DNA of 63,351 nt, the filler included, from Perkinsus chesapeaki ATCC PRA-425 (lineage: Eukaryota > Protista > Perkinsozoa): the NCBI GenBank assembly GCA_013115145.1. It is 5 parts of 5 records of this genome, joined end to end, with 100 filler letters (N's around TTAATTAATTAA, not from the genome) between each part and the next. Parts side by side here need not be neighbours in the genome. Positions count along the whole stretch, not along the records: positions 1 to 20,556 come from JAAPAO010000618.1; 4 more parts are not named here. One strand, given 5' to 3'. Under the pieces are notes generated by a model. It saw nothing but the letters and a program-made list of their open reading frames with translations. It was not told the DNA's origin and made no database searches. Each line of letters opens with the position of its first letter. Position 1 is the first letter of the stretch. The translations under genes and the position numbers were made by a program. Shown here piece by piece: positions 1-20,556 of this stretch.

Positions 1-70
1 AGGAGGAGATATAATAGAAAGGAGTTTGATAGGAAATATGTTACTAGTGATACGGAGGAGGAGATATAAT
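1..70 (-). repeat. Intronic ~52-bp minisatellite unit (same family as 35538-35706)
   Basis: Reverse complement of ctcctccgtatcactagtaacatatttcctatcaaactcctttctattatat, which is tandemly repeated in a DnaJ intron. Confidence 0.85.
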
Positions 71-117
71 AGATAGCTTCCTATTTCTCGTAGTGTATGT
101 GTAGCTTTATTCTTCAG

Positions 118-5118
<5,001 letters not shown>

Positions 5119-7216
5119 CCAAGCTAATATGGATTGGGCCAAGGACTTTTGATACAATTTATACGTATGTCGCCTGGCGGCATCGTCCCCGAGGTGCAGC
5201 GTGTTCAAGAATCCCAATATTGGCCCGACAACGTTTTTTCGTGATGCTTCCGATCTGTTGAGTTCGTTAAAATTTGAAGAGTGTGATCATCGGCACGCTC
5301 AAGACCTTTCAGCGAACTATAAGAACTCGTTAACGCACAACAGATGAACAGAGAGACTAACATTATTTTAGACTCGGCTTTTGAGCAGGCTTGAACGATA
5401 AAGTAGAAATAGGAAAACCGCAAATAGTACAGATTCCAATCTGAGGCATCCTAATAATGACGCGAATCATACCCGCTTCTACGCAGTAGATAAGACCATC
5501 ATCGACGAGGTAACATTGCGGTGAAGTTCCGCCTTTGATACGGCCCACGTAACGCTGTCTACCAATGCTGGACTAGCAGAGCCTTAGAGGGAGACCATTA
5601 GAAGCTCTATGTGAAGCCTCTATTATAGAAAATTGTATATGAAAATAGCATTGTGAAGTAAATTTGGAGTCGGAGAGCCGGCTCCCTGCCGTGACCCTCC
5701 GTTTTGTATTCGCACCACTCTAGTTCAGTTGAGGCTTGCCAGTGACTGAATACTCGGATTACGCTCTCTGGCTGAGGCATCAGCGCTATTTTCTCGTAAT
5801 ATCCCAATGTATCAAAAGCGGTGTTAAGTTACGAATTCCAAAGGAGGTATAACCTAATGTAGACTGCTAGCTCGAGAGCATTAGACTAATTCAAGATGGC
5901 TACAAGAGTCATCAGATAAGAGCTCGCTTTTCCAGCCTGGTTCCAACCATAATCCCATAGAACAGCAGACGAACGGCAACGATCCTCAAGCCCGGACACG
6001 CTGATCGAATGGATTTAGAAGCAAAGCAAATAGGCCTCAGGGGCGAAACAATGTAATCACTGCTCTCTTGCAAAGAGAGGTTACTAGGAACTTCCTTGAC
6101 CAAAGACAGGCGAAGCACATCGGACAGACTTCAGAGGCTCGGAATCAGAGCGAGTTTAGAGGCTCAGAATCAGACCCATGTGGATCGGACCCAATCTGAA
6201 TGATCACCATACAAAGTCAGTCGCTAGATATGGCAATATCGCAATGATCGCAAAGATAGCTCGTAAAGATAGAGGATCGTAGCTCAATCTCGCAACGAGA
6301 GATTTGTCACGCACGCATGTATAATGGAGCATTTAGAGGGCAAAGGATATCAGGCGGACTGAAGTGTAGAATCTCAAATAACAAGGAGCTCACGGAATCA
6401 CGTGAATTACGGTACGGTGCGGAGGGATTCCTTTATTTCTGCATTCTGAGCTACCATGGCTACATTCCTACTCATGAAAATAGTTCACGTTGACGTGTGC
6501 ATGCTGCCATGAAAACTGTTTACTGTGTCACACTCACATGCTAGTACTACTGATAAATCGAAGGAAGTGGCGATAGGACATTGAAAGGAATTCACTGTCA
6601 CTTCAACTCGCCAACTGTCTTGATCTTGTGAACACGGTTGCGTTAGAGGAACCTGATTTGTGGACAGCCAGCAAGCTCAACTTGGCAGTATGTCGTGCCC
6701 TCAGAATCCAGAATCGCGAGCATCGTAATGGAAACGTATTACTCTATTTTGAGTAGGTGCTGATTAGCAAATTTGCTAGGATCGGTCAGGTCATTTTGTG
6801 GGAAATGCACGATGATACCAACTGTTAAGTGAGTCACTTAAAATGACTCCAACGAAGTCTAGGTACAATAGAGAGTTGAGGACTGAATTTTTTACACTTT
6901 ATATAGCTGCGCGATATAGGCATGTCACATACCATGTGTAATTTAGTGCAAAGCGGCACCTTTAGGGTGGAAGTTCTTACCTTCTACCTGAGCAAGCGTC
7001 TTAAAGAAAGTAGCTCCTCTTATAGGTCTACTACTCGTTTCCTCAAGTGGCAGGAAAATGGGCCATGGCCCATGGACTTGCATTCTACAGTATACGTCGT
7101 ACTTCGAGTGGAAACCTCGAGGCTCAGCCAGGTGTGACCGTGACACATCGCTCAAAGCGAATCGCTTTGGTCCAAGCAGTGATTATAGTGATCTGGTTCT
7201 CCTTCTACGTGGAGAA

Positions 7217-8476
7217 ATGATAAACTTCTATATATTCTTCACTGCGGCCATTTCCATGTTAAGTCGTGTAACGGCCCAGCCTAATGGCGCCTATGGTTCG
7301 GATACCACTATCGTACTCTTCTTTGAGATATTTGTGGATCCTACCAGCCCCACTAAGGGTACTGTGGACCTGTCTGGTATCCCTGAGCCCGAGTATGGCG
7401 ATTCACTCGACGTGAGAGGTATCGCATTCGACTACGATGGCACTGGACTCGTTCTAAATGGCGATGATACAGATTTGAGGGAAATGTTACGGCACTATAA
7501 TCTCCCCCCAGCCCAATGGTCGGCTCTCCAATATGACCCTTCCTCGGATGAAATCGATGTTAATTGGAATGGTACCATCTTTAAGTGCACCAAGCAACAT
7601 CTTGAGGAGGATAACTTCCAGCCACGTTATTCTGAGGAGACCCCTGTTGATAGTCATAATGGTAGGAGACTTGGTGTGAGGAATGGTGTTGAACGGAAAA
7701 TGACCATCGAGCTCCCTGACGGAACGAGAAATTACTGGATTTATTATCCAGCATCAGGCTCGGTCAGGTTTGTCCTGGTCAACCTACACTGTTTGTGGTG
7801 TCATTGCGATGAATGGAAAGATCGAAGCCGTTTGATGGATTATGCTGAGGAGTACAGATTTGCCTTGTTCACTCCATGCGGCTTGTGGAATGCTTTCCTC
7901 TTGCCATCCTGGAATGCGGGAGATTGCTGTCATGCTACAGACACTACCAACGACACGGAGTTCATCAAGGCGATGATAAGAGACCCTGAGTGGAAACTCC
8001 CTGAGTGGACCCCAGTTTATGCTGTTGGATACAGCAATGGTGGAATGATGGCTGAAACTTTGATGTGCCGTAATGTGGTGTCGAGAGCCGTTTCCATCGC
8101 TGGCGCCCTAGTCATAGGCAGAGGGACTGTACACGTCGACACATGTGATGCGGTTTATAACTCTACTGATTACAAAAGAGTACTTCACATTCATGGAACT
8201 GAAGACGGTTATGTTTCGTGGAAAGGAAACACCCGCCTTGGTTTCCCTCCAGTTAGAGCTGATATGGAAGGATGGGCAAAGAGGATGGGGTGTTCCAAGT
8301 CATTTGATCGAACAGAGCTCTTCGAGAGTCGCTTCAAGTACCTCGACTGGCATTGCCCTTGGTCAAGAAATGTTTCCTTGGTCCGCGTTGAAGGTGGAGC
8401 TCATAGATATTACAAAAAGAGGAATCTTGATGTTGCCGAGTATTCACTTCGCTTCCTCACAGCGCCAAACCCGTAA
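7217..8476 (+). CDS. Secreted LpqC/PHB-depolymerase-like esterase (alpha/beta hydrolase), copy 1, intronless
   Basis: Signal-peptide-like MINFYIFFTAAISMLSRVTAQ; WNAGDCC, GYSNGG nucleophile elbow, HIHGTED and GGAH motifs. Confidence 0.8.
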   Translation: MINFYIFFTAAISMLSRVTAQPNGAYGSDTTIVLFFEIFVDPTSPTKGTVDLSGIPEPEYGDSLDVRGIAFDYDGTGLVLNGDDTDLREMLRHYNLPPAQWSALQYDPSSDEIDVNWNGTIFKCTKQHLEEDNFQPRYSEETPVDSHNGRRLGVRNGVERKMTIELPDGTRNYWIYYPASGSVRFVLVNLHCLWCHCDEWKDRSRLMDYAEEYRFALFTPCGLWNAFLLPSWNAGDCCHATDTTNDTEFIKAMIRDPEWKLPEWTPVYAVGYSNGGMMAETLMCRNVVSRAVSIAGALVIGRGTVHVDTCDAVYNSTDYKRVLHIHGTEDGYVSWKGNTRLGFPPVRADMEGWAKRMGCSKSFDRTELFESRFKYLDWHCPWSRNVSLVRVEGGAHRYYKKRNLDVAEYSLRFLTAPNP

Positions 8477-9846
8477 AGCCGTAGTTCATTATGAGCTGTT
8501 CATGAGGCCCTTTGTTGTTGGTGGTATGCTGTGCGTCGGCATCGATCAATCTTTCATCTATCTATGAGACATCAAAAATTTTTAGGCAGCAACGGCCTAC
8601 AGCCTTCCAGGTTCCGGACACATCGCAGTTTTCGAATTCTGGTAATCGGCAAATCGTTGTTGATCTTTTGCTTACCATCTTGATAGTTGTGTTGATGAAT
8701 TCCAGCCTGGAATTTCCAGGCAGTTCACAGTTCATACTTGCAAAATAAGACTTAGTCAAAAAGTCTTTGTGATAAGGATGCTGCTTGTTCGCTCACACAA
8801 TGGTTTGATTAACTGCTTCGACGAGCTGACTGACTAGTTGTCATCTAGTAGTTGAGCCTCTGTTACCAAGCAACCCTATCTCGTTTGTTACCAATGGAAG
8901 GTTCTGAGTAGATACTCTTCATTAAGGGGTGTCAAGTCGTGGTGAGAAGTACAAAGTTGCCAAAAACAGAGCTTAAGATCTTGCGTGAAATACACCTATG
9001 GTCACTCAGGAGTAAGTTTTAATCTCAGACCGAATTGCCACAAAGAGAGTTTTCGCAGTGGGGGGCTTCGTAAATAAGATTTACTAAAGATAAACGAATC
9101 ATTGAATCAATGACCTTCTCTAAATAATATACCCATTTCTCTCGAGACTTCGGTTGTTCGCGTGTTAATATGTGCAATAAGACCCATTGGACCATCGTCA
9201 GCTACTCAGGACACCGTTAGCCACCTATTAGCTGTATCGTGCGCATCTGATTCCTGGCCTCAGCTTGGCATCATGTGCTGCGTCATAGCTCGCGAGTTGT
9301 AAGCTTGGAGTGTTGGTATTCGATCTCGGCGAGATCATCTCGCACAATTTGGTAACAAGTTAGAAATCTTGGTCCCGCTGTAGCCTCCGAGTCTCGGAGT
9401 CCGAGAAGAAGTCGCCACAATGCATTAATACAAGTGGGGAAGGAAACGAATGCGAAAGAATCTGAAATAACTATGGGCTCACGGAGCACTAGTCGCGGTG
9501 TTGTGCGAGGGGATCCCTTCATTTCTGCTGCTCGATCACACTTGTGTGTGCGTGGAGATCAAATTGTCTCCAAGAGACAATTTGCTGTGCCGTGCTCACA
9601 TGCTAGTACTACTGAGGAATTGAAAAAGTTGAAGTTGCGATAAGATATTATAAGAGGTTCACTACTACGTCGACTTGGTGACTGATGACTTATCGTGTGA
9701 TTACGGTTTCGTTCAACGCAATGCCTTACACATCGTAGTTCGAGCGGCAACGTTAAGACTCTGCCGGGTGTGACCGTGACACCGTGACACCTCGCTGTTG
9801 TTCATGCCATCATCAGCGTGATCTGTTTCTGCTTCATTGCCGAGAA

Positions 9847-11106
9847 ATGATACACCTCTACATACACTTCGCTGCGGCTATGTCCATGCTAAGTCATGTA
9901 CGAGCCCAGCCTAATGGCACCTATGGCTCGGATACCACTATCGTACTCTTCTTTGAGATATTTGTTGATCCTACCAGCCCCACAAAGGGTACTGTGGACC
10001 TGTCTGGTATCCCTGAGCCCGAGTATGGCAATTCACTCGACGTGAGAGGTATCGCATTCGACTACAACGGCACTGGGCTCGTTCTAAATGACAATGATAC
10101 AGATTTGGGGAGAATGTTACGCCAGTATAATCTTCCCCCAGCTCAATGGTCGGTTATCCAATATGACTCTTCCTTGGATGAAATCGATGTTAATTGGAAT
10201 GGTACCATCTTCAAGTGCACCAAGCAACATCTCGAGGACGATAACTTCCAGCCACGTCATTCTGAGGAGACTCCTGCTGATAGTCATAGTGGTAGGAGAC
10301 TTGGTGTGAGGAATGGTGTTGAACGACAAATGACCATCGAACGCCCCGAGGGGAATAGAACTTATTGGATTTATTATCCAACAACAACCTCACTCAAATT
10401 TGTCCTCGTCAACCTACATTGTACGGATTGTCACTGCGATGAATGGAAAGATTATAGTCGTTTGATGGATTATGCTGAGGAATACAAGTTTGTCTTGTTC
10501 ACTCCATGCGCGGTGCAGAATGTTGTATTCCTTGAAGCCTGGAACGCGGGAGGATGCTGTCATGCTACATCCTCTGTCAACGACACGGAGTTCATCAAGG
10601 CAATGATAAGAGACCCCGAATGGAGTATTCCAGAATGGGTTCCAGTTTATGCTGTTGGATACAGCAATGGTGGGATGATGGCTGAAACTTTGATGTGTCG
10701 TAATGTGGTGTCGAGGGCCGTTTCTATCGCTGGTATCATCTTCATGGCCAGAGGAACTGCAGCCTTCGACGCGTGTGATGCGGTTTATAACTCTACTGAT
10801 GACAAAAGGATGCTCCACATTCATGGAAGTGAAGACGGTTATGTTTGGTGGAAAGGGAATTGGTTCCTCGGTCACCCCTCAGTTAGAGCTGACATGGCAA
10901 GGTGGGCGAAGAGGATGGGATGTTCGAAGTCATTCAATCGAACAAAGCTCTTCGAGGGTCGCTTCAAGTACCTCGACTGGCATTGCCCTTGGTCAAGAAA
11001 TGTTTCCTTGGTCCGCGTTGAAGGTGGAGCACATAACTATTACAAAAGGAGGAATCTTGACGTTGCTCAATATTCGGTTCGCTTCCTCACAGCGCCAAAC
11101 CCTTAA
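9847..11106 (+). CDS. Secreted LpqC/PHB-depolymerase-like esterase, copy 2 (tandem paralog)
   Basis: Colinear and highly similar to 7217-8476, with the same motifs. Upstream flank is also partly duplicated (about 6530 versus 9590). Confidence 0.8.
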   Translation: MIHLYIHFAAAMSMLSHVRAQPNGTYGSDTTIVLFFEIFVDPTSPTKGTVDLSGIPEPEYGNSLDVRGIAFDYNGTGLVLNDNDTDLGRMLRQYNLPPAQWSVIQYDSSLDEIDVNWNGTIFKCTKQHLEDDNFQPRHSEETPADSHSGRRLGVRNGVERQMTIERPEGNRTYWIYYPTTTSLKFVLVNLHCTDCHCDEWKDYSRLMDYAEEYKFVLFTPCAVQNVVFLEAWNAGGCCHATSSVNDTEFIKAMIRDPEWSIPEWVPVYAVGYSNGGMMAETLMCRNVVSRAVSIAGIIFMARGTAAFDACDAVYNSTDDKRMLHIHGSEDGYVWWKGNWFLGHPSVRADMARWAKRMGCSKSFNRTKLFEGRFKYLDWHCPWSRNVSLVRVEGGAHNYYKRRNLDVAQYSVRFLTAPNP

Positions 11107-12559
11107 CGCCGACTCGGCGTTAAGCAGAAGCTCGGAGCTTCTAAGACTAGCCTGGCCTAATAGTCGGAACCGCTTATGAATAAAAATGACAAAATGAAGA
11201 TATTTATTGTACATTTCGTTCACGTAGAACCTCTTCACGCGGAGTATTGTCGACTATTCCAAAAGCCTCTGCTGTTCATTCATGCTTAGGAAATCTAGTA
11301 CAACTCGTCGCTGATTTAGTCACCAAATTTCAGTTATCAGATCTGCTGTGGTAAAGCCTTTAAATCCCAGCCTCACGCTGTAGATTCTCTTGTCTTGTAG
11401 ATGGCGTCCTCAGCAGTCGGTTCTAACTTTAAGTTATTCAGTTGATCTATTCGCTCTTGCGTTCATAAACACTACAAGAAGCCTAGGCTTAGAGGCCTAT
11501 CCGCACGTTCCATCAAGCTTGATTGCGATCTATTATCAGCTCCGGATTTCACTGTTGCTTACTGATCCGAATTCTACACCTTAGTTACTTGATTGTAGTT
11601 CGATCCGGGTCTCTGGCTCATGACTCACCGTGGACAACATCACATAATAAGGTGCTGATTAACACATTTCATACCAAAAATCGTTAGCATCGGTGTGGTG
11701 ATCCTGCAAGGCATCGGTGTGATTCCTGACTACCCGGCAGGCTCGACTACTTTCTCTGCTTGCCGACCGGCTATTTCGATGAGTCGGCTATGCCCTCCTG
11801 ATGGCGAATTGGCACTACTTAGAAACACAAATCGCCAAGAAAATCAGAAACAATCAATCCGTGTCGCATTTAAACTTGGCTTGGATTACCAGCACCTTTC
11901 GATTCATCGCGCATTATTTCGTCCAATGGAAGCGTCATCGCTACTAATTGCATAATGCCCATATCAGCATTCACACGTATAGGGCATGGCACGTATGCAA
12001 GGACACCCGGAGCCTCCTTATGCCGGAATCGCCGATTTCTCCTATAGTAAGAATATTCCGAGATGGCCTGCCCATTTACTCACTTGTCTTGAATCAACCT
12101 GTTTTGCTCTAAATCAGACTCTAATCGTAGCGCGGCCCTCAGGAAACGATCCATCGGGTATGCCCCCGCCACGTGAGTGTGTACCTGCAGTCTATAACTC
12201 GCCTCACGGTGCCGCGTTTGGTGATTGCACCAGCGGACATTCATGGTTCACCGTCTCTGGAATGTTCATTTAATATGCTTAACCGCGTTTAAGCCAGGGC
12301 GAATCGTAAGGCATGTGGGAATATTTTTCAAGGTTAGCCAAGTACTATAAAATTTTAAAAGTATGGTTCCGTGGTTATGTATACATTCTTGTGGATGCCC
12401 CTGTTTGGCATTCCCCTCTGTTTGTGGCTTGTTCACATGCGTGGGGCAGCTGGCTATGCCTGTGGGTCGTTCCGCCGCCTTTTCGCCGTATCTAGCTCTT
12501 GAACTAGCGAAGCTCGATCAAAATATTGATGTTTGCTCATTCCAGTGTCAGAACGTCCA

Positions 12560-13406
12560 AACGTACAATCAGTCTTACTTGAAGAGACTCTTCAACTCTG
12601 TACCGCAAAACCTCTGCAAATTTATCGAACCTGGTTTTCCCCGACACAAATAGGATATCATCATCTGGGGCAACCCACAGGGCCTGCCACGGGAAAGTAG
12701 GCATCTACTTAATTTCTTTTACTCACCTGCCTCACGCTAGGATCTTCCATACAATACAATTTTGAAACATCATGCAGTTCAAATTGATAAGTACGTTTGC
12801 GCAATTCGACCGGATTGGCGCCCGTGGGAATATCGCTGTCATCTTCATTTGCCTGCAATATGCTGTATAATATTAATCAATAGGATCACCTTGTCAACAG
12901 CGATAGGCGTGAATGCCAGTGCCGTCTTAGGGAAAGCGGATTCGCCGTGCTTGTCTTGGAAACGCTCCAGTAGAAACCGATTGCACAAACCAATTGCCTG
13001 AGTGAAGACGTAGTACGTATAACGTTGGGGGAAAGATAATAGTTTAATGCCTATTTAGTTATGATTGGACAAGTCATTTGCGTATCATTATCATCAATAA
13101 AAGACTCGATCAAGACTAGTATCACAAAAGTGCACCTTAAAATTGAGTGGTCCTATAGTGTAGTGGTTAGCACTCTGGACTTTGAATCCAGCGACTCGGG
13201 TTCAAATCCCGATAGGACCTTTTACTTACTTTACAGGCGTTCCAATGAGCCGCCGTGCCCACCGCCTCTATCCGTCTCTTCGACACGTTTTGCGCTTTAT
13301 AGCAATTAAACAGCGCCCCGGCTAGACTTTTAACTCGAGCTATATCCGAACTGCACCGCAACACAGTCTCATGGTTCAGAGATACCGGCAACCGAGAGGA
13401 CACCAT
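12560..13406 (-). CDS. SpoVS/Alba-fold-like protein, multi-exon, 3' end unresolved
   Basis: Spliced reading VLRCSSDIARVKSLAGALF...IEAVGTAAHWNACK|AIGLCNRFL...ALAFTPIAVDK resembles the SpoVS consensus. Phase-0 intron 13229-12998 has a GTAAGT donor and CAG acceptor. Confidence 0.5.
13149..13220 (+). tRNA. tRNA-Gln(TTG), intact, followed by a T-run terminator
   Basis: GGTCCTA/TAGGACC acceptor stem, D-loop AGTGG, anticodon loop CTTTGAA, T-loop TTCAAAT; 72 nt. Confidence 0.97.
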
Positions 13407-13530
13407 AAATACTATAACAGTTCGAGAGGATCAATTAAGAACAACACAACCATCTCATGGATCCTACTACTCTCATTAGTATGAAAAATGATACATAAAA
13501 AAGTGGAGGCGTCAATCGAGGGCGCAAGGA

Positions 13531-16500
13531 TCACGACTTGGGGAGCGTTGGTCGCTCCGTCACCACCGAGTTCGTCCTCAAACCATGGCTTCTGTCACTA
13601 GCCTCCACGTTGTCCAAGAAATACACACAAATGACTGTCACATTATCGCTGCTGATTCGTCGCTTCTCTTGTTCCATCAGGACCGATCTTACCAGAGCCT
13701 TCGCCGGACTCTCGCCTGAACCACCGACAAATTAACATCGTTATTATCCTGTCGCACCGAAGCGATAAATTTTTCAAGTTGTAACCGTATCCTCCGGAGT
13801 CCTTTGCGGAAGTTCCAGCGTCATATTACCTCTAGCGCCGAAGCCCTGTTATTTTCACAACAAGTCTACGCTCCACCACAGGGGCGAATAAAACACCCAA
13901 GTCATCACGATATCAACTATAATCCATCTTCAACATAAGCATCCTTAGCAATACTATTTTATCACTATTACTTTTCCATATCATTTCTTATTTCATCACA
14001 TTTTTACTTTCCCCTATTACTCGCAATTTTATCGAATTTATTATTTTTCCATGTCACTCATTACTTCATCAAACTTATCTTAATTCCATATTGTTTATCA
14101 TCCCACCACACTGGTCGATGACCACCTTACCTGCGGCTCGGCCTGCTTGAGCTATCACCGCTGCCTCCTGCGCCGAGTACACATCCCACAGACCATCAGA
14201 TGCCTGGAAACTCACAAACCTCGCCGTCTCCCTATCTATTACTGTTACCAAAATTATCGCCCGGAAATTGTCCTCATACGGCAGAACGGTGACATCGGGT
14301 ACGTTGGAGAGGCCGTACATCTTCAAATCCTTACCCTAAAATATCCACAAAAATGCAGCCGCTAAATGGGCAATTTTCCTCATCAACGGTGACGAAATAT
14401 CGTCCAAACATATGAAATCTTGGGGGAAAATAATTTTTTCCGGAAATTTCATGGCGTTCCAGTCGAGCATTATGCTTCAGGATTGAGAGGAGTGCTGTTC
14501 CTGTGACAAGTCGATAGACAGGAAATCGTATCGAGTTCGACGGGGAGATACCAGCAGGTCTCTTAAGACTGTGGCCGAATAGATGCGTTGTTCGCATGTC
14601 CGCGAATCTACCTAGTTCCACTCAGTGAATCGAATCACTGTGCAAAAGTCGGTCAGAAGTCAAACTTCCCGGAGCCAATTACCAGTTGCTATATTCGAAA
14701 GAATGCCCTATTTCCCACCACTCCCCTCCCCCCAATAGCCTTTCCGCTACTACCCCGAATGCCCGGCTGTACTGCAACTGCATCGGTTGCTCCTGCATAG
14801 CCTTTCGCACAGCGAAGTCTCCTCCACGTATAAATGGCTTATTATTATGGTTGTGCAAATACCTACGAATATGAGAGGAACCATTCCACACCAGTAAGGT
14901 AGCTATTACTCCACGGACCCACCACAGCGCTCGATGCGCCTTCGTTCGGAAACTGAAAAGGAAGACAATCGAGCATGCCCCACGAATCTGCACGATCGGG
15001 CCGGCGTCCCGCCACCTAGGGACTCCCCTATCTACCGGGCTTTTACGAAATGAAATGCCCTAGTTTTTAATGAAGCAGAGTTTTTATTGTGCTTATTCTT
15101 TCGACTCATTTCATTCCAGTAGTGCACATTTCTAACCGAAATGGTACATCGCTAATACAGGCAGCCTCCCTCTAACAGCAGCCCACCAAAGACATTACCG
15201 AGGAAGTCTACTAGATTCCCGACCACACAAGAGGTTTCTGTGCGCTACATTCGAGCCGCTATTGCCTTGCGGGTAACGTATCTTCAACCTAGTTTACGAT
15301 ACGAAAAGCATCATCACCTCCGGCGTATCCAAGCTCGAAGCGTACTCCTGGCGAATACTGCCCACTCTGCCCTCTAGTACCTTGGTCCGGTTTATGATCC
15401 ATAGTTAGAAACTCCCCTGATATGTTATGAGTGGACATCCTGCTTTGGTCGACACTGCCGCGATCTTGGGTCAACAAACATATACGACTGTCGCCCTGAG
15501 ACAGTAGGACTGCTTCCTTTTCAATACAAAATATAAAAATTACAATGAACGGTATATGGTCAAAGCTTGTCAACCTTCGAACTTTAGAACAAAACTCTCA
15601 AAACTGGCCGAGAAATAAAATTTTTCGCGATTTGCCTAAGGAAAATGCACGGTCCTTATATAAATTGAGCTTAGAATATATTATTGGTTTATTATCTTTA
15701 TTACTATTATTATACTATTATTATATTAAACGTCTCTACACATTATACTACTCTATATAATTCCACTTCTACACTATTTTCCATACTCGCCCGTCTACGA
15801 GTGACTTAACCCGCAGCTGTACTCCAATACTGACTGCGTGGTTAAAGGACAAGTTGTACTCGAGAAAGAAATATAATGCAGAATAATACTATACAGAAAA
15901 AGCATCAGATCCATTCCTTGCTGGTATTTCCTCCATCATCACTAACGACTCCGTTTTGGAGCGTTTTGAAGTCTAAGACTAAAGTCACCTGTGAATATCG
16001 AGGCAGACTCTGGCTGGCAGAGCGGAAACATCTGTCCACCTTCCGAACCACCTCCTAATCGAGGCTCTTCACTAACTTCAATGTTAAAACTCGATTGCAA
16101 TTTTGCCACTATTTCCTTCGATGTGAGCAGCGTATTTTATAATGCGCAAGAGGGGATTCGAACCCACGACCTTTTGATTGCCAGCTGCCTATTATTACCA
16201 AATGACCCACGGCCAAGTGCTCCGGAGTGAGGACGGCACATACACCAGTGCTGGCCGCGTAATGTATCCCTTCAGCGCCGCACAAATGCATCAATTCTAC
16301 ATCTGATCGGACGAACCTAATACACAAATTATAAAAGATAGAATAGAGTCGCCGGGGTTCGAACCCACGACCTTCCGCAGTACATATCCCCGATTGCAGA
16401 TTCCAAGCAACTTCTTTCCTTGATCCATTTCGACCGGGTCTGAGGCTCGTCAGACTTTTGCAGAGCCTCGAATTCTCTCCACCCGGGTGTACGTATCAGG

Positions 16501-16800
16501 TGAGCGAACACCAGGCGCTTCACATTCTCCGCTGCAAAGTCACCTGTTTCCACAGTCCAACACGTATAGCACCCCGCTACCAACCGAATGGTCCCGGGTT
16601 CAATCCTTGCTACCTGCTGTTCCGTCAAAAAGGGCAAAACCTGACGCCGGCTCATTCACGCTCAAATCCGGGCATATTGTGAACCGATCCTCCTGCGTCC
16701 TTCGGCCTCCAATGTGAGTAAACGCCGACACTTCAAGCGTCGTCCCTGGGATTCGAACCGGGGCGGTTATATCATGCTGGATTTGCGGACAGCTCATCAA
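13531..16800 (-). CDS. PP2C/PPM-family protein phosphatase, multi-exon
   Basis: GGRRTQEDRF, FDG, ASTGVCAV, HL|GDSR, TMDHKP, QYSRAFG, ASDGLWDV and DNVTVICVYF motifs in order. Confidence 0.9.
15496..16198 (-). other. PP2C intron beginning with a sense tRNA 3'-half remnant (16143-16184)
   Basis: ct-ggc-aa tcaaa aggtc gtggg TTCGAAT cccct cttgcgc a tt lies just after the GTAATA donor. Confidence 0.75.
16317..16383 (-). pseudogene. 67-nt PP2C intron containing a sense tRNA 3'-half remnant
   Basis: GTACTGcgga aggtc gtggg TTCGAAC cccgg cgactct a ttct. Confidence 0.75.
16544..16613 (+). pseudogene. 70-nt PP2C intron containing an antisense tRNA 3'-half remnant
   Basis: Plus strand reads ct-acc-aa ccgaa tggtc ccggg TTCAATC cttgc, ending at the donor. 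Confidence 0.7.
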
Positions 16801-17049
16801 CCCAGCACGAAAACTACTTCAAAAACATCTCCTTACTCTTCATGTAAAAAGCGCGCGCCCGATACAACTGTAGCTTCGCTCCGCCCAATTAATTGGTATT
16901 TTTACAACTCAAATCGTTTAATGTTAATTAGCATAATAAGCCATAGAAGTCCATTAACATGTTACTGCCTTCTACCTGAAAGAGGCCCCGGTAAAAAAAA
17001 TCAACGGGAAAATTTTCCTGCCCTCGTCCATCTGCGTAAGCGAAACTAA

Positions 17050-20000
17050 TCAATGTCATCTATCGCTCCAAAGCAGCATCAGCAGCAGGCTTGCACAGTT
17101 TTTCGAGCCAATGATGATGTCTCCAACATTCGTATTTTCATCGTCCTTCTTCAGGATATCTTATCTCCAGAACTGCATTTATTCATAATATTACGGAATG
17201 ACACTTTTCCGCAATTTTTCATGTGCATTCCACTAAATACACTTCAATGTAAATGAACACCATCGAAGAGGCGTAATAATACCAATACCGGATTTTTAAT
17301 TTGATACTGATTGCATAGCAGATGAACCAAAAGCTCACCAGTGCCTCCAGCTGCCTCCTGCCGACGTAGTTCGCGATGCCTATATATCTCTCTTTGAATA
17401 TTCTTTTGCCGTTCCTTCTCTACAGCGATGGCTTCGGCCAGCTCTGCGTCACGGCGTCTCTTCTCTTCCAGTTCTCTCTCAATTTCCCGTTGGTCCGCTT
17501 CCTAAACCTCTCAAATCCTTTCGAAGAAGCTGCAGTAAATCCGACCGCAGGAATCCAGAGTCGATCTCCGGCGGGACGTCGAAGCCAGATACGTGAGAAG
17601 TGTCAGAAACATATATGTGAAGATAATTTAGACGATTTATGAACGTCATTAAAAGAATGATCGATGCGAAAGGTGTCTTCTGATAAAAATAAGTGGATGT
17701 ATTTTGTATTTGGATACCCAGACTACTCAGCAGTCATACCGCTCCTTCCTCTAATCACCAGTTCACAACCCTCTCCCCCCCTCGCTTACTTCTCTCTCCC
17801 GAGCCTCCTTGATTTGCCTTGCTAAGGTTTGAGCATGCTCCTTTCTTGCACGCTGAAACACAAGACACCAGGTAGTCCAAAGAATGGCGTTCCCAGTCCC
17901 GTAAATGCTACAGTTTCATGGAGAGCTACAATGGGTTCAGAGGCAAGGTAAATGAAACCAGTTGGGGAACAAACAAGCAGTGTTCACCGCGCAAGTCCTT
18001 GCATGGCTTATCTGTCTCAGTTACAAACCCGCAAGAAGCGAAACTTCCAGTGCCATATAGTGATTTCGCTCTCACCGTCACATTTGCGTGACACAAAAAC
18101 TGTCTCCCTCCATATCTCTCAAGCCTCTCCACCCGCTCACCTCTTCAAAGTCCTTCCTTTCTTCAGCGAGTTTATAAAACTCCTCCACATCTGCATCGAT
18201 TTGCTGACGCTCATATTCAGCCTGCTACGAGCGACGGGAAATACGGTATGCACGCATGCGCTTCACCTCCTCCCTTCTCCTTTGTCTAACCCTATCGTGG
18301 AGCTCTACTTGTTTTTCCCTATCCTCATAGACCTCCCTCAACAACGCTAACCGAGCCTCCCGCTCAGATTCCCATTGTGCGAACCTATCCGAAAACCCCA
18401 TCTACTAACACATCAGTATCGATGTGTCATCAAGTGCTTTCGAACTTTAATAAAAATACAGCCTTTCAAGATGAAAAAATGAGATATTTTTTCGGCAGTG
18501 GAATTCATTATAGGCCGCCGCCCTCTAGGAGCGCCTGTACCTTTTCTGCCACTGTCTTTCGGCCTCCTCCTCCTCCAGCCTCGCCAGCTCCTCACCACTC
18601 TTCGCTCGAAGTGCCATTTCCACTTTCAACGCTTCGTTAAACTGACATCAAGCGAAGAAGGAGATTACACTCTCCCGACAATCCACAAGTGGAGAGTATA
18701 ACGAACATCAGCAGTACCAGAACATCGACCAAAGGACGAAGACGCCCGAAGAACCATCCAGACGAAAAATATAACATCTCAAAGGATTCCCACCAAGTCA
18801 TGGGCGATCTTCGCCACACACTAGGCGCCAGGATGTCACATACCGTGCAGACTAGACCGTCCCTTGCTTAGACGTGCCAGGAAAGAACAAGGTCTTCCAA
18901 GGGTAGGCGCTCTCACCTCGTATTGCTGCCGCATCTGCAATGCCTTCTCCATGGCTTCTTTTTCAGCCAATTTCTTTTCATTTGCAAGCACGTTCAAAAT
19001 CTGCCGTCGAGATCCACACAGTCGCGGCGCGCAAGAAAATCTTACGAGCTGCTTGTCCTGAGTCTTTTCTCTTTCCTTTTCGGCATCTCGAGCCTTCTTA
19101 GTTTGAAGCGCGTACTCATCCATTCGTCTAGAAGGGGCACAGGTTCGAACCCCGATGACCGCATTTTTGCTACCGTCGAGCCTCAACGTTCTTTATTGCC
19201 GCTTCTTGCGCTGTTCGCCTTTTATCCTCTTCGACTTCCTTCCACACGCTTCGCATGTACTCCCTCTCCCCCTCTAACGCTCGTTGCTTCTCCTACAGTT
19301 ATTAAATAATAATATTATTACTAACAATCCTCTCTAACTCCAAAAAATCAACAAAAAAGTCACAGAAGTTCAGATCAATAGGCAAACGACCAGCGCCCGC
19401 CGAACTCCACCTGTTCTTCAATTTTTTTCAATTTCATCTGCTCATTCAATGTTTCCTTAGCCAAGGCCGTTCGAGCAGCTTTGATCTGCTCCTGGGCCAG
19501 CTCTCTCACAACCTTATCTTTATACCTATTACAATTCGGGCATTAGACAGGAGCATCGGAATGCCCCCTTTTGCCAAGAATATATTCCCTTTTGCAGCCC
19601 TAAAAACACATTTTTTCCTCAAAAGGCAAATATATCTCCGCAAAAGGAGCAGCCTCCGAAAGATGCTAGGCGCTGCCCTAAAGAGAATGCGGTGAAGTGG
19701 CGGAGATGAAGTGCAGTAGAGGCACGACTATGCTTTCGAAGACGCGCAATATTCTACTACCCCTCCAAGATACATATTGAATATTTAAAGTGGAAAAGAT
19801 GATATAAAAAGTATACCGCAAAAGAGCAGGTGTATCTCATAAAACGTCCGAGGGCAACGCGCCAGATTAGCCTGTTCGACTAAGCCGAGCCGAAGAGGCT
19901 CGATTGTATTCATGACAATCATTCAGGTTCATGTCAGGTCTACGATCTGACGCAGACCTTACCCTTCTTGCCGCAGTCTATCATAAATAGCTTCTTCCTC

Positions 20001-20330
20001 CTTCTCCATCTTTTTAATGTCCTCTTTCTCACTGAGCTGCTGATCCCGAGTTGCTACCACCTAGACGTAAAATGGTTCACTAACTACTAGCCAATTGAAA
20101 CTGGCTCACCTCAAGTGCGAAAAGGTCATGATCTGCTTCACGAAGTTCATCCAAGCTCGCCCTCCAACGCTGATACCTAAACCGCGCGCCGCAAAATACA
20201 TTCGCTCATCAAAAACTCGCTCCAGAAAGTAATCATCGTCAGTAGCTTAGTTACTTTCATTGTAAGATTATTCCGCTTTCAACCCACCAAAACCAACACG
20301 TGATATGAGAAGCTTGAAGTTCATAATGAT
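17050..20330 (-). CDS. Coiled-coil flagellar protein, CFAP53/TPH-domain-like; boundaries approximate
   Basis: E/R/K/Q-rich exons such as YQRWRASLDELREADHDLFALE|VVATRDQQLSEKEDIKKMEKEEEAIYDRL resemble CFAP53 from memory. Confidence 0.5.
19128..19173 (+). pseudogene. 46-nt intron made almost entirely of an antisense tRNA 3' end plus terminator
   Basis: Plus strand reads gggc acagg TTCGAAC cccga tgaccgc a TTTTT gctac. Confidence 0.75.
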
Positions 20331-20459
20331 GAAATATGAAGCGAAAAGATACGATCATTGAGTAGTCTTATAATGAGCCTTATGATCCTCATTATGTTAT
20401 CCAATTATAATGCATATAGAGAAGGGAAGTCTCTCAAGATGGCCGCCCGCTAACTATCC

Positions 20460-20556
20460 AATAAGACTGAATATATCTATTTAATAAGACTGAATATATC
20501 TATTTAATAATACTGAATATATCTATTTAATAAGACTGAATATATCTATTTAATAA
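20460..20556. repeat. 23-bp AT-rich tandem repeat, about 4 copies, at a contig end
   Basis: aataagactgaatatatctattt repeated. Confidence 0.95.

Follow-up and report, generated by a model that had tools for sequence, protein, structure and literature searches.

In Caenorhabditis elegans, 44–47% of the tRNA genes are intronic and approximately 44% of those are antisense, and the pairing of specific tRNA genes with specific host genes is conserved across species (PMC4999229). Human nimtRNAs and intronic tRNA look-alikes can enhance splicing, and their position relative to the splice sites matters (PMC7722341). In Perkinsus marinus, more than 500 tRNA gene copies in five types have been reported, together with disrupted tRNA genes and tRNA-targeting Dada transposons, whose insertion sites lie in the A-box of tRNA-Ile, -Leu, -Gly, and -Tyr genes; tRNA-Gln does not figure among the targets named there (PMC3706591). 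The high copy numbers and the disruption by Dada make tRNA fragments and debris plausible. Introner elements, for example those of Amoebophrya, form families whose members have inverted or direct repeats in common over their entire length (PMC7789003). A search of open-access text found no paper on Perkinsus that describes tRNA genes within introns or introns derived from tRNA.

The window analyzed here is a stretch of 63,351 nucleotides from Perkinsus chesapeaki ATCC PRA-425, and all features described below lie in its first piece (positions 1–20,556; JAAPAO010000618.1). Very probably, this piece carries a functional tRNA-Gln gene antisense in intron 1 of a gene for a SpoVS/Alba-like protein, in a nesting that would predate the split from P. 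marinus and whose tight packing would have been brought about by deletion.

Some other features of the piece are described here. A multi-exon gene on the plus strand (1152–4685) gives a weak cyclic-nucleotide-binding match (E 7e-4) and a match to a protein kinase C-terminal lobe (E 1e-16), and its predicted product resembles a cGMP/cAMP-dependent kinase. Two intron-less ORFs of 419 aa (also given as 419 and 472 aa), paralogous and arranged in tandem, lie at 7217–8473 and 9847–11103 on the plus strand. They share a 300-nt stretch with 87% identity, each has a signal-peptide-like start and a GYSNGG motif, and neither matches a Pfam family at an E value of 0.01. The GC skew is positive at 1–11000, where the examined ORFs and exons are on the plus strand, and negative at 11000–20000, where the three examined genes are on the minus strand. 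Since the sign matches the gene strand on both sides, the skew tracks the transcribed strand. A 23-nt tandem repeat of about four TATCTATTTAATAAGACTGAATA-like copies (20451–20542) is located at the edge of the piece.

The tRNA-Gln gene and its host gene

The only tRNA that ARAGORN detects in the whole piece is a 72-nt tRNA-Gln(UUG), anticodon TTG, at 13149–13220 on the plus strand, which folds into a canonical cloverleaf. The same interval matches the Rfam tRNA model RF00005 with 72.8 bits (gathering score 29, E 1.7e-14) over model positions 1–71 of 71. The internal B-box, GGTTCAAATCC, is located at 13199–13209, and tRNA-Gln is nearly universal in sequence across 13158–13195. Cloverleaf, above-threshold score, B-box, T-run, and conservation together mark the sequence as a nuclear tRNA gene of Pol III type 2. 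The original prediction of an intact tRNA-Gln on the strand opposite to an intron is thus borne out by ARAGORN, Rfam, and the orthologue in P. marinus.

The 3′ end of the gene should be noted. The fourth A of the A-run on the minus strand is the complement of the discriminator base, and therefore the T-run of the gene is at 13220–13223 on the plus strand, consisting of the discriminator T and TTT. This T4 run is short for a terminator and is presumed to act as the Pol III terminator; the copy in P. marinus is likewise followed by exactly TTTT after its 3′ end. On the other side, the 13-nt block GTGCACCTTAAAA (13130–13142, plus strand) is positioned 6 nt upstream of the tRNA. Its counterpart in P. 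marinus is GTGCACCTCAAAA, positioned 4 nt upstream of the tRNA there. The block occurs once in the piece and is the only sequence in the intron flanks that is conserved with P. marinus, making it a candidate Pol III upstream element.

The host gene is on the minus strand. Exon 1 (13230–13406) has 59 codons from the ATG and would encode the N-terminal part of the SpoVS/Alba-like domain, and exon 2 (12890–12997; 36 codons) would encode the remainder. Intron 1 (12998–13229; 232 nt, GTAAGT...CAG, phase 0) lies between them and contains the antisense tRNA, which is separated from the donor by 9 nt and from the acceptor by 151 nt. Read on the minus strand from 13229, the intron gives GTAAGT, AAAA, and then the reverse-complemented 3′ end of the tRNA, in the predicted order. 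Intron 2 (12853–12889) has 37 nt (43 nt in P. marinus) and is followed by exon 3 (12727–12852; 42 codons), which is conserved at positions 790–893 of the P. marinus contig L001. A putative 43-nt intron (12684–12726) is assigned from its GT-AG signals only, and a putative exon 4 (12579–12683; 35 codons) from its open frame and GT-AG signals only. Exon 4 has no homologue and no family match in Pfam, and it provisionally ends the gene.

The joining of exons 1 and 2 is judged from the orthologue. Used as the query of a word search, exon 1 returned P0002, a partial "hypothetical protein" of 93 aa from P. marinus ATCC 50983 with 80% identity, which is itself a gene prediction on the 893-bp contig L001. 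The match of P0002 to exon 1 covers residues 2–57 and extends through the final codon of the exon (80% amino acid identity), and the match to 12997–12890 covers residues 58–93 and begins at the first codon (86%). There is no gap between the two matches, so nothing separates K from A at the junction (K|A) in the orthologue. Against the Pfam family SpoVS (PF04232), P0002 scores 29 bits, with a cutoff of 24 (E 8.9e-7), and the match over residues 13–69 crosses the junction 57|58. With the exons searched singly, exon 1 of the window scores 13.2 bits against the same cutoff of 24, and exon 2 gives no match. The best PDB match of P0002 is Thermus SpoVS (2eh1/2ek0), unbroken over residues 14–82 with an E value of 0.92 and thus illustrative only; in this alignment, the junction falls inside a conserved A-x-K-A-I stretch.

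Differences between the window and P. marinus are concentrated at third codon positions. The numbers at codon positions 1, 2, and 3 are 11, 2, and 30 in exon 1; 7, 1, and 21 in exon 2; and 6, 6, and 20 in exon 3. This excess argues for coding sequence in exactly these frames, joining in phase 0. Together with the colinearity of both flanks with one P. marinus protein and the SpoVS domain spanning the junction, it indicates that 13229–12998 is an intron of one host gene, and the predicted junction between 13230 and 12997 agrees with this homology. Splicing at this junction would be expected from the same observations.

The opposite reading is that the tRNA is intergenic: the flanking frames would not be parts of a single gene, and the GT...AG at their edges would be a coincidence. 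Open frames of about 80 codons are frequent by chance in the piece, so open frames alone prove nothing, and a large HMMER search with exon 1 gave only a spurious bacterial repeat protein; both points would fit an intergenic tRNA. Such a tRNA would not account for two conserved segments with a third-position bias whose frames join in phase 0, which are colinear with a single SpoVS domain, and which have the same boundaries in P. marinus. The intergenic reading is almost certainly wrong.

Searches for relatives of the host gene gave little else. Searched exon by exon, the gene gave no usable match in Atlas, no match in PDB or NCBIfam, and in Pfam a weak match to SpoVS for exon 1 only. The HMMER search of 1.84 billion representatives with exon 1 did not return P0002, and its single match, a bacterial SpaA-repeat surface protein, was rejected since the score was boosted by repeats. 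Used as a query for further host-gene orthologues, P0002 retrieved only itself, and a metagenome scan was blank. An AlphaFold model of P0002 predicted without an alignment had a pLDDT of 51 and was set aside. The SpoVS family has been described as bacterial (PMC11621453). Here, a putative SpoVS/Alba-like domain is found in an alveolate gene with spliceosomal introns, and the sole orthologue found is the P. marinus gene (L001 221–893). Protein identity of 80–86% over this lineage-restricted gene points to a source of the window other than P. marinus ATCC 50983.

The orthologous intron in P. marinus

The P. marinus contig has the same arrangement. In L001, exon 1 (221–391) is followed by a 247-nt intron (392–638; GTGAGA...CAG) and exon 2 (639–746), and ARAGORN detects a tRNA-Gln(ttg) at 435–506 on the strand opposite to the gene. 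The intron is placed at the same codon as intron 1 of the window, and the tRNA is antisense in both. The same codon, the same tRNA, and the same orientation suggest that the nesting is older than the species split. The comparison thus indicates that the nesting of tRNA-Gln in the host intron is ancestral to both species, and that the pairing of host and tRNA is conserved between two Perkinsus-like genomes.

Conservation within the intron is uneven. In this comparison with one other species, the tRNA-Gln is identical at 72 of 72 positions, across a divergence that leaves 73–75% identity in the exon DNA, changes 51 of 92 third codon positions, and makes the intron flanks essentially impossible to align. 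This observation indicates strong purifying selection on the tRNA, with the rest of intron 1 free to change. The two introns are similar in length (232 and 247 nt, both 1 mod 3), and the side upstream of the tRNA has 151 nt in the window and 132 nt in P. marinus. The spacing between the donor and the tRNA is 9 nt in the window vs 43 nt in P. marinus, so the tight layout is not an inherited module.

The length of intron 1 is about five times that of its neighbors, as it must hold the tRNA gene and its flanks. Other introns that can be defined in the piece are short: those of the host gene measure 37 and 43 nt, a PP2C-like gene has introns of 70 and 55 nt, and those of a coiled-coil gene are 46 and 45 nt long. 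A single long intron, of 703 nt, departs from this pattern. No unusual folding is seen in the remainder of the intron 1 RNA (z 0.49 and 0.44). The tRNA-Gln would be a self-contained RNA polymerase III gene, with promoter boxes inside it, a short conserved block upstream, and T4 as its terminator; it is nested head-on in intron 1 of a small gene of the RNA polymerase II type. The host pre-mRNA would carry the complement of the tRNA, which would be removed with the intron. The GTAAGT-AAAA-tRNA packing is specific to the lineage of the window, where deletion would have removed dispensable intron sequence and so brought the splice donor up against the Pol III terminator.

B-box motifs without a tRNA and the origin of the introns

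The exact B-box consensus GGTTCRAAYCC occurs at five loci, including the tRNA, vs 0.02 matches expected, in a count covering one 20-kb stretch. The four orphan sites are 16154–16164, 16355–16365, 16749–16759, and 19142–19152, and they have only the 12-nt core GGTTCGAAYCCC in common. A scan of the piece showed no excess of B-boxes with one or two mismatches, and no orphan with one mismatch was found. A relaxed Rfam scan of 13230–20556 found no partial tRNA, the only match being one of 10 bits to the tmRNA clan (E 0.73). Within the 20-kb stretch, the orphans do not form a tRNA-derived repeat family of a SINE-like or introner-like kind, as the four share nothing beyond the core, only two of them share 21 nt, and no target-site duplications are found.

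The site at 19142–19152 is included in a 46-nt GT-AG intron of the coiled-coil gene (19128–19173, minus strand), which had been described as a remnant. The minus strand from 19173 reads GTAGC-AAAAA-TGCGGTCATCGGGGTTCGAACC, exactly as quoted in that description, and 22 nt of the intron match a reverse-complemented tRNA 3′ end (T-loop, 3′ strand of the T-stem, 7-nt acceptor strand, and discriminator). On the plus strand, the order is T-loop, 5-nt T-stem strand, 7-nt acceptor strand, discriminator A, and TTTTT. The motif thus has the exact geometry of a tRNA 3′ end, is antisense to the gene, and abuts the donor. Frame arithmetic fits the intron assignment: removal of 19173–19128 joins two coiled-coil open frames, and without it the upstream frame stops at once. 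A word search with the 116-aa ORF of this gene, limited by the length of the query, found no orthologue.

Two further sites are in the PP2C-like gene. The 21-mer AAGGTCGTGGGTTCGAAYCCC, corresponding to a tRNA variable loop and T-arm, occurs twice on the minus strand (16153–16173 and 16354–16374). The copies are 201 nt apart in successive introns, and none is expected by chance. A 55-nt intron (16371–16317) starts at the 16355 copy, its donor GT being the GT of the tRNA-like AG|GTC. The 16154 copy is 26 nt inside the 703-nt intron (15496–16198, minus strand), which is about ten times the usual length and contains a long AT-rich low-complexity stretch. The remaining orphan, GGTTCGAATCC (16749–16759, minus strand), is either coding, in the N-terminal part of the PP2C-like gene (frame ...APVRIPG...), or intronic, at the 3′ end of an alternative 85-nt 5′ intron ending CCCAG|GG. 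The PP2C exon pieces, each searched alone, have no Pfam match. The original view that the tRNA-Gln intron has the same layout as the remnants therefore fits, among the four orphans, the site at 19142 alone and not those at 16154 and 16355, which are in sense orientation; nor does the 9-nt spacing, with 43 nt in P. marinus, agree with it.

Three readings of the orphans are considered. Intronic tRNA genes may decay while their introns shrink to about 45 nt, leaving the donor-proximal 3′ end of the tRNA, with the tRNA-Gln intron as the intact first stage. The excess of four exact orphan B-boxes over 0.02 expected matches would follow from such decay, and the 46-nt intron 19173–19128, with a T-loop, 5 + 7 + 1 nt, and T5 in antisense orientation at the donor, looks like its product. 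The donor-side spacers of 9 and 43 nt show that indels do remodel the tRNA-Gln intron, and the hundreds of copies of some P. marinus tRNA genes make copy turnover plausible (PMC3706591). However, the sole orthologous comparison shows stasis, with an identical tRNA and similar intron lengths. For the orphans at 16154 and 16355, the sense orientation gives the better reading, and the latter orphan supplies the donor itself (AAG|GTCGTGGGTTCGAA), so that a full tRNA could not fit inside that intron. Neutral decay should also leave intermediates, but neither an excess of B-boxes with one or two mismatches nor a partly decayed tRNA in the relaxed Rfam scan is seen, and the orphans have no more than the 12-nt core in common. 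We therefore regard a decay series as unlikely.

Alternatively, tRNA genes or their 3′-half fragments may have landed at coding AG|GT sites and been spliced as new introns in an introner-like manner, which would cover the orphan T-arms and possibly the tRNA-bearing intron too. The start of intron 16371–16317 exactly at the variable-loop AG|GTC, with the exon resuming as G|GT after TAG, suggests such an event, and the host introns may postdate the acquisition of the gene if SpoVS is bacterial, as described. Insertion is nevertheless very unlikely, since AG|GT is a generic splice-site context, there are four cases only, no target-site duplication is present, and nothing is shared beyond a core of 12–21 nt. 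Yeasts have "extra TFIIIC" (ETC) sites, and the orphan B-boxes may similarly be kept as TFIIIC-binding sites without a tRNA rather than being decaying remnants. The perfect 11–12-nt core in all four orphans, the differing surroundings, and the lack of one-mismatch orphans are what such retention would give. The orphans were found by a motif search, so ascertainment explains part of this pattern, and a contrast of four vs zero is weak statistics; TFIIIC binding is accordingly a highly improbable account of the orphans. Taken broadly, it is distinctly doubtful that spliceosomal introns in Perkinsus are repeatedly built from tRNA genes and their 3′ halves, as stubs or AG|GT insertions, with B-boxes that might bind TFIIIC and the tRNA-Gln intron as a living first stage. 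The preferred reading of the tRNA-Gln intron remains that of an old nesting packed tightly by deletion.

Significance and comparison with known systems

The antisense nesting of the tRNA-Gln is real and old, but it is an ordinary arrangement and a known kind of gene nesting. A tRNA in an intron is a textbook situation, which by itself changes nothing. The locus provides a clean example, validated by comparison between species, in an alveolate with introns otherwise of about 40–70 nt. It shows how little space is needed between a Pol III terminator, as presumed here, and a Pol II splice donor, the two abutting each other. It also gives a dated reference point, as the nesting predates the divergence from P. 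marinus. Of greater interest is the strong enrichment of perfect orphan B-box/T-arm motifs; three of the four are located in short introns, and one of these forms the donor. If tRNA pieces regularly make or create introns, or if TFIIIC binds the boxes, this would bear on intron turnover in compact protist genomes.

The Dada elements and multicopy tRNA genes of P. marinus (PMC3706591) are known from the same genus; neither a Dada sequence nor a tRNA split at the A-box is seen here. Introners (PMC7789003) resemble the present case in being short introns with recurring sequence beside the splice sites; unlike them, the orphans share only the 12-nt B-box core. The human nimtRNAs (PMC7722341) are likewise tRNA-shaped sequences within introns, but they are derived from mitochondrial tRNAs and act in the pre-mRNA via the cloverleaf, whereas here the pre-mRNA would carry the complement of a genuine nuclear tRNA. 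In C. elegans (PMC4999229), as at this locus, independent Pol III tRNA genes are found in the introns of protein genes and the pairing is conserved. The locus differs in belonging to an alveolate with ordinary introns of about 40–70 nt, in which the tRNA dominates its intron and is placed 9 nt from the donor.
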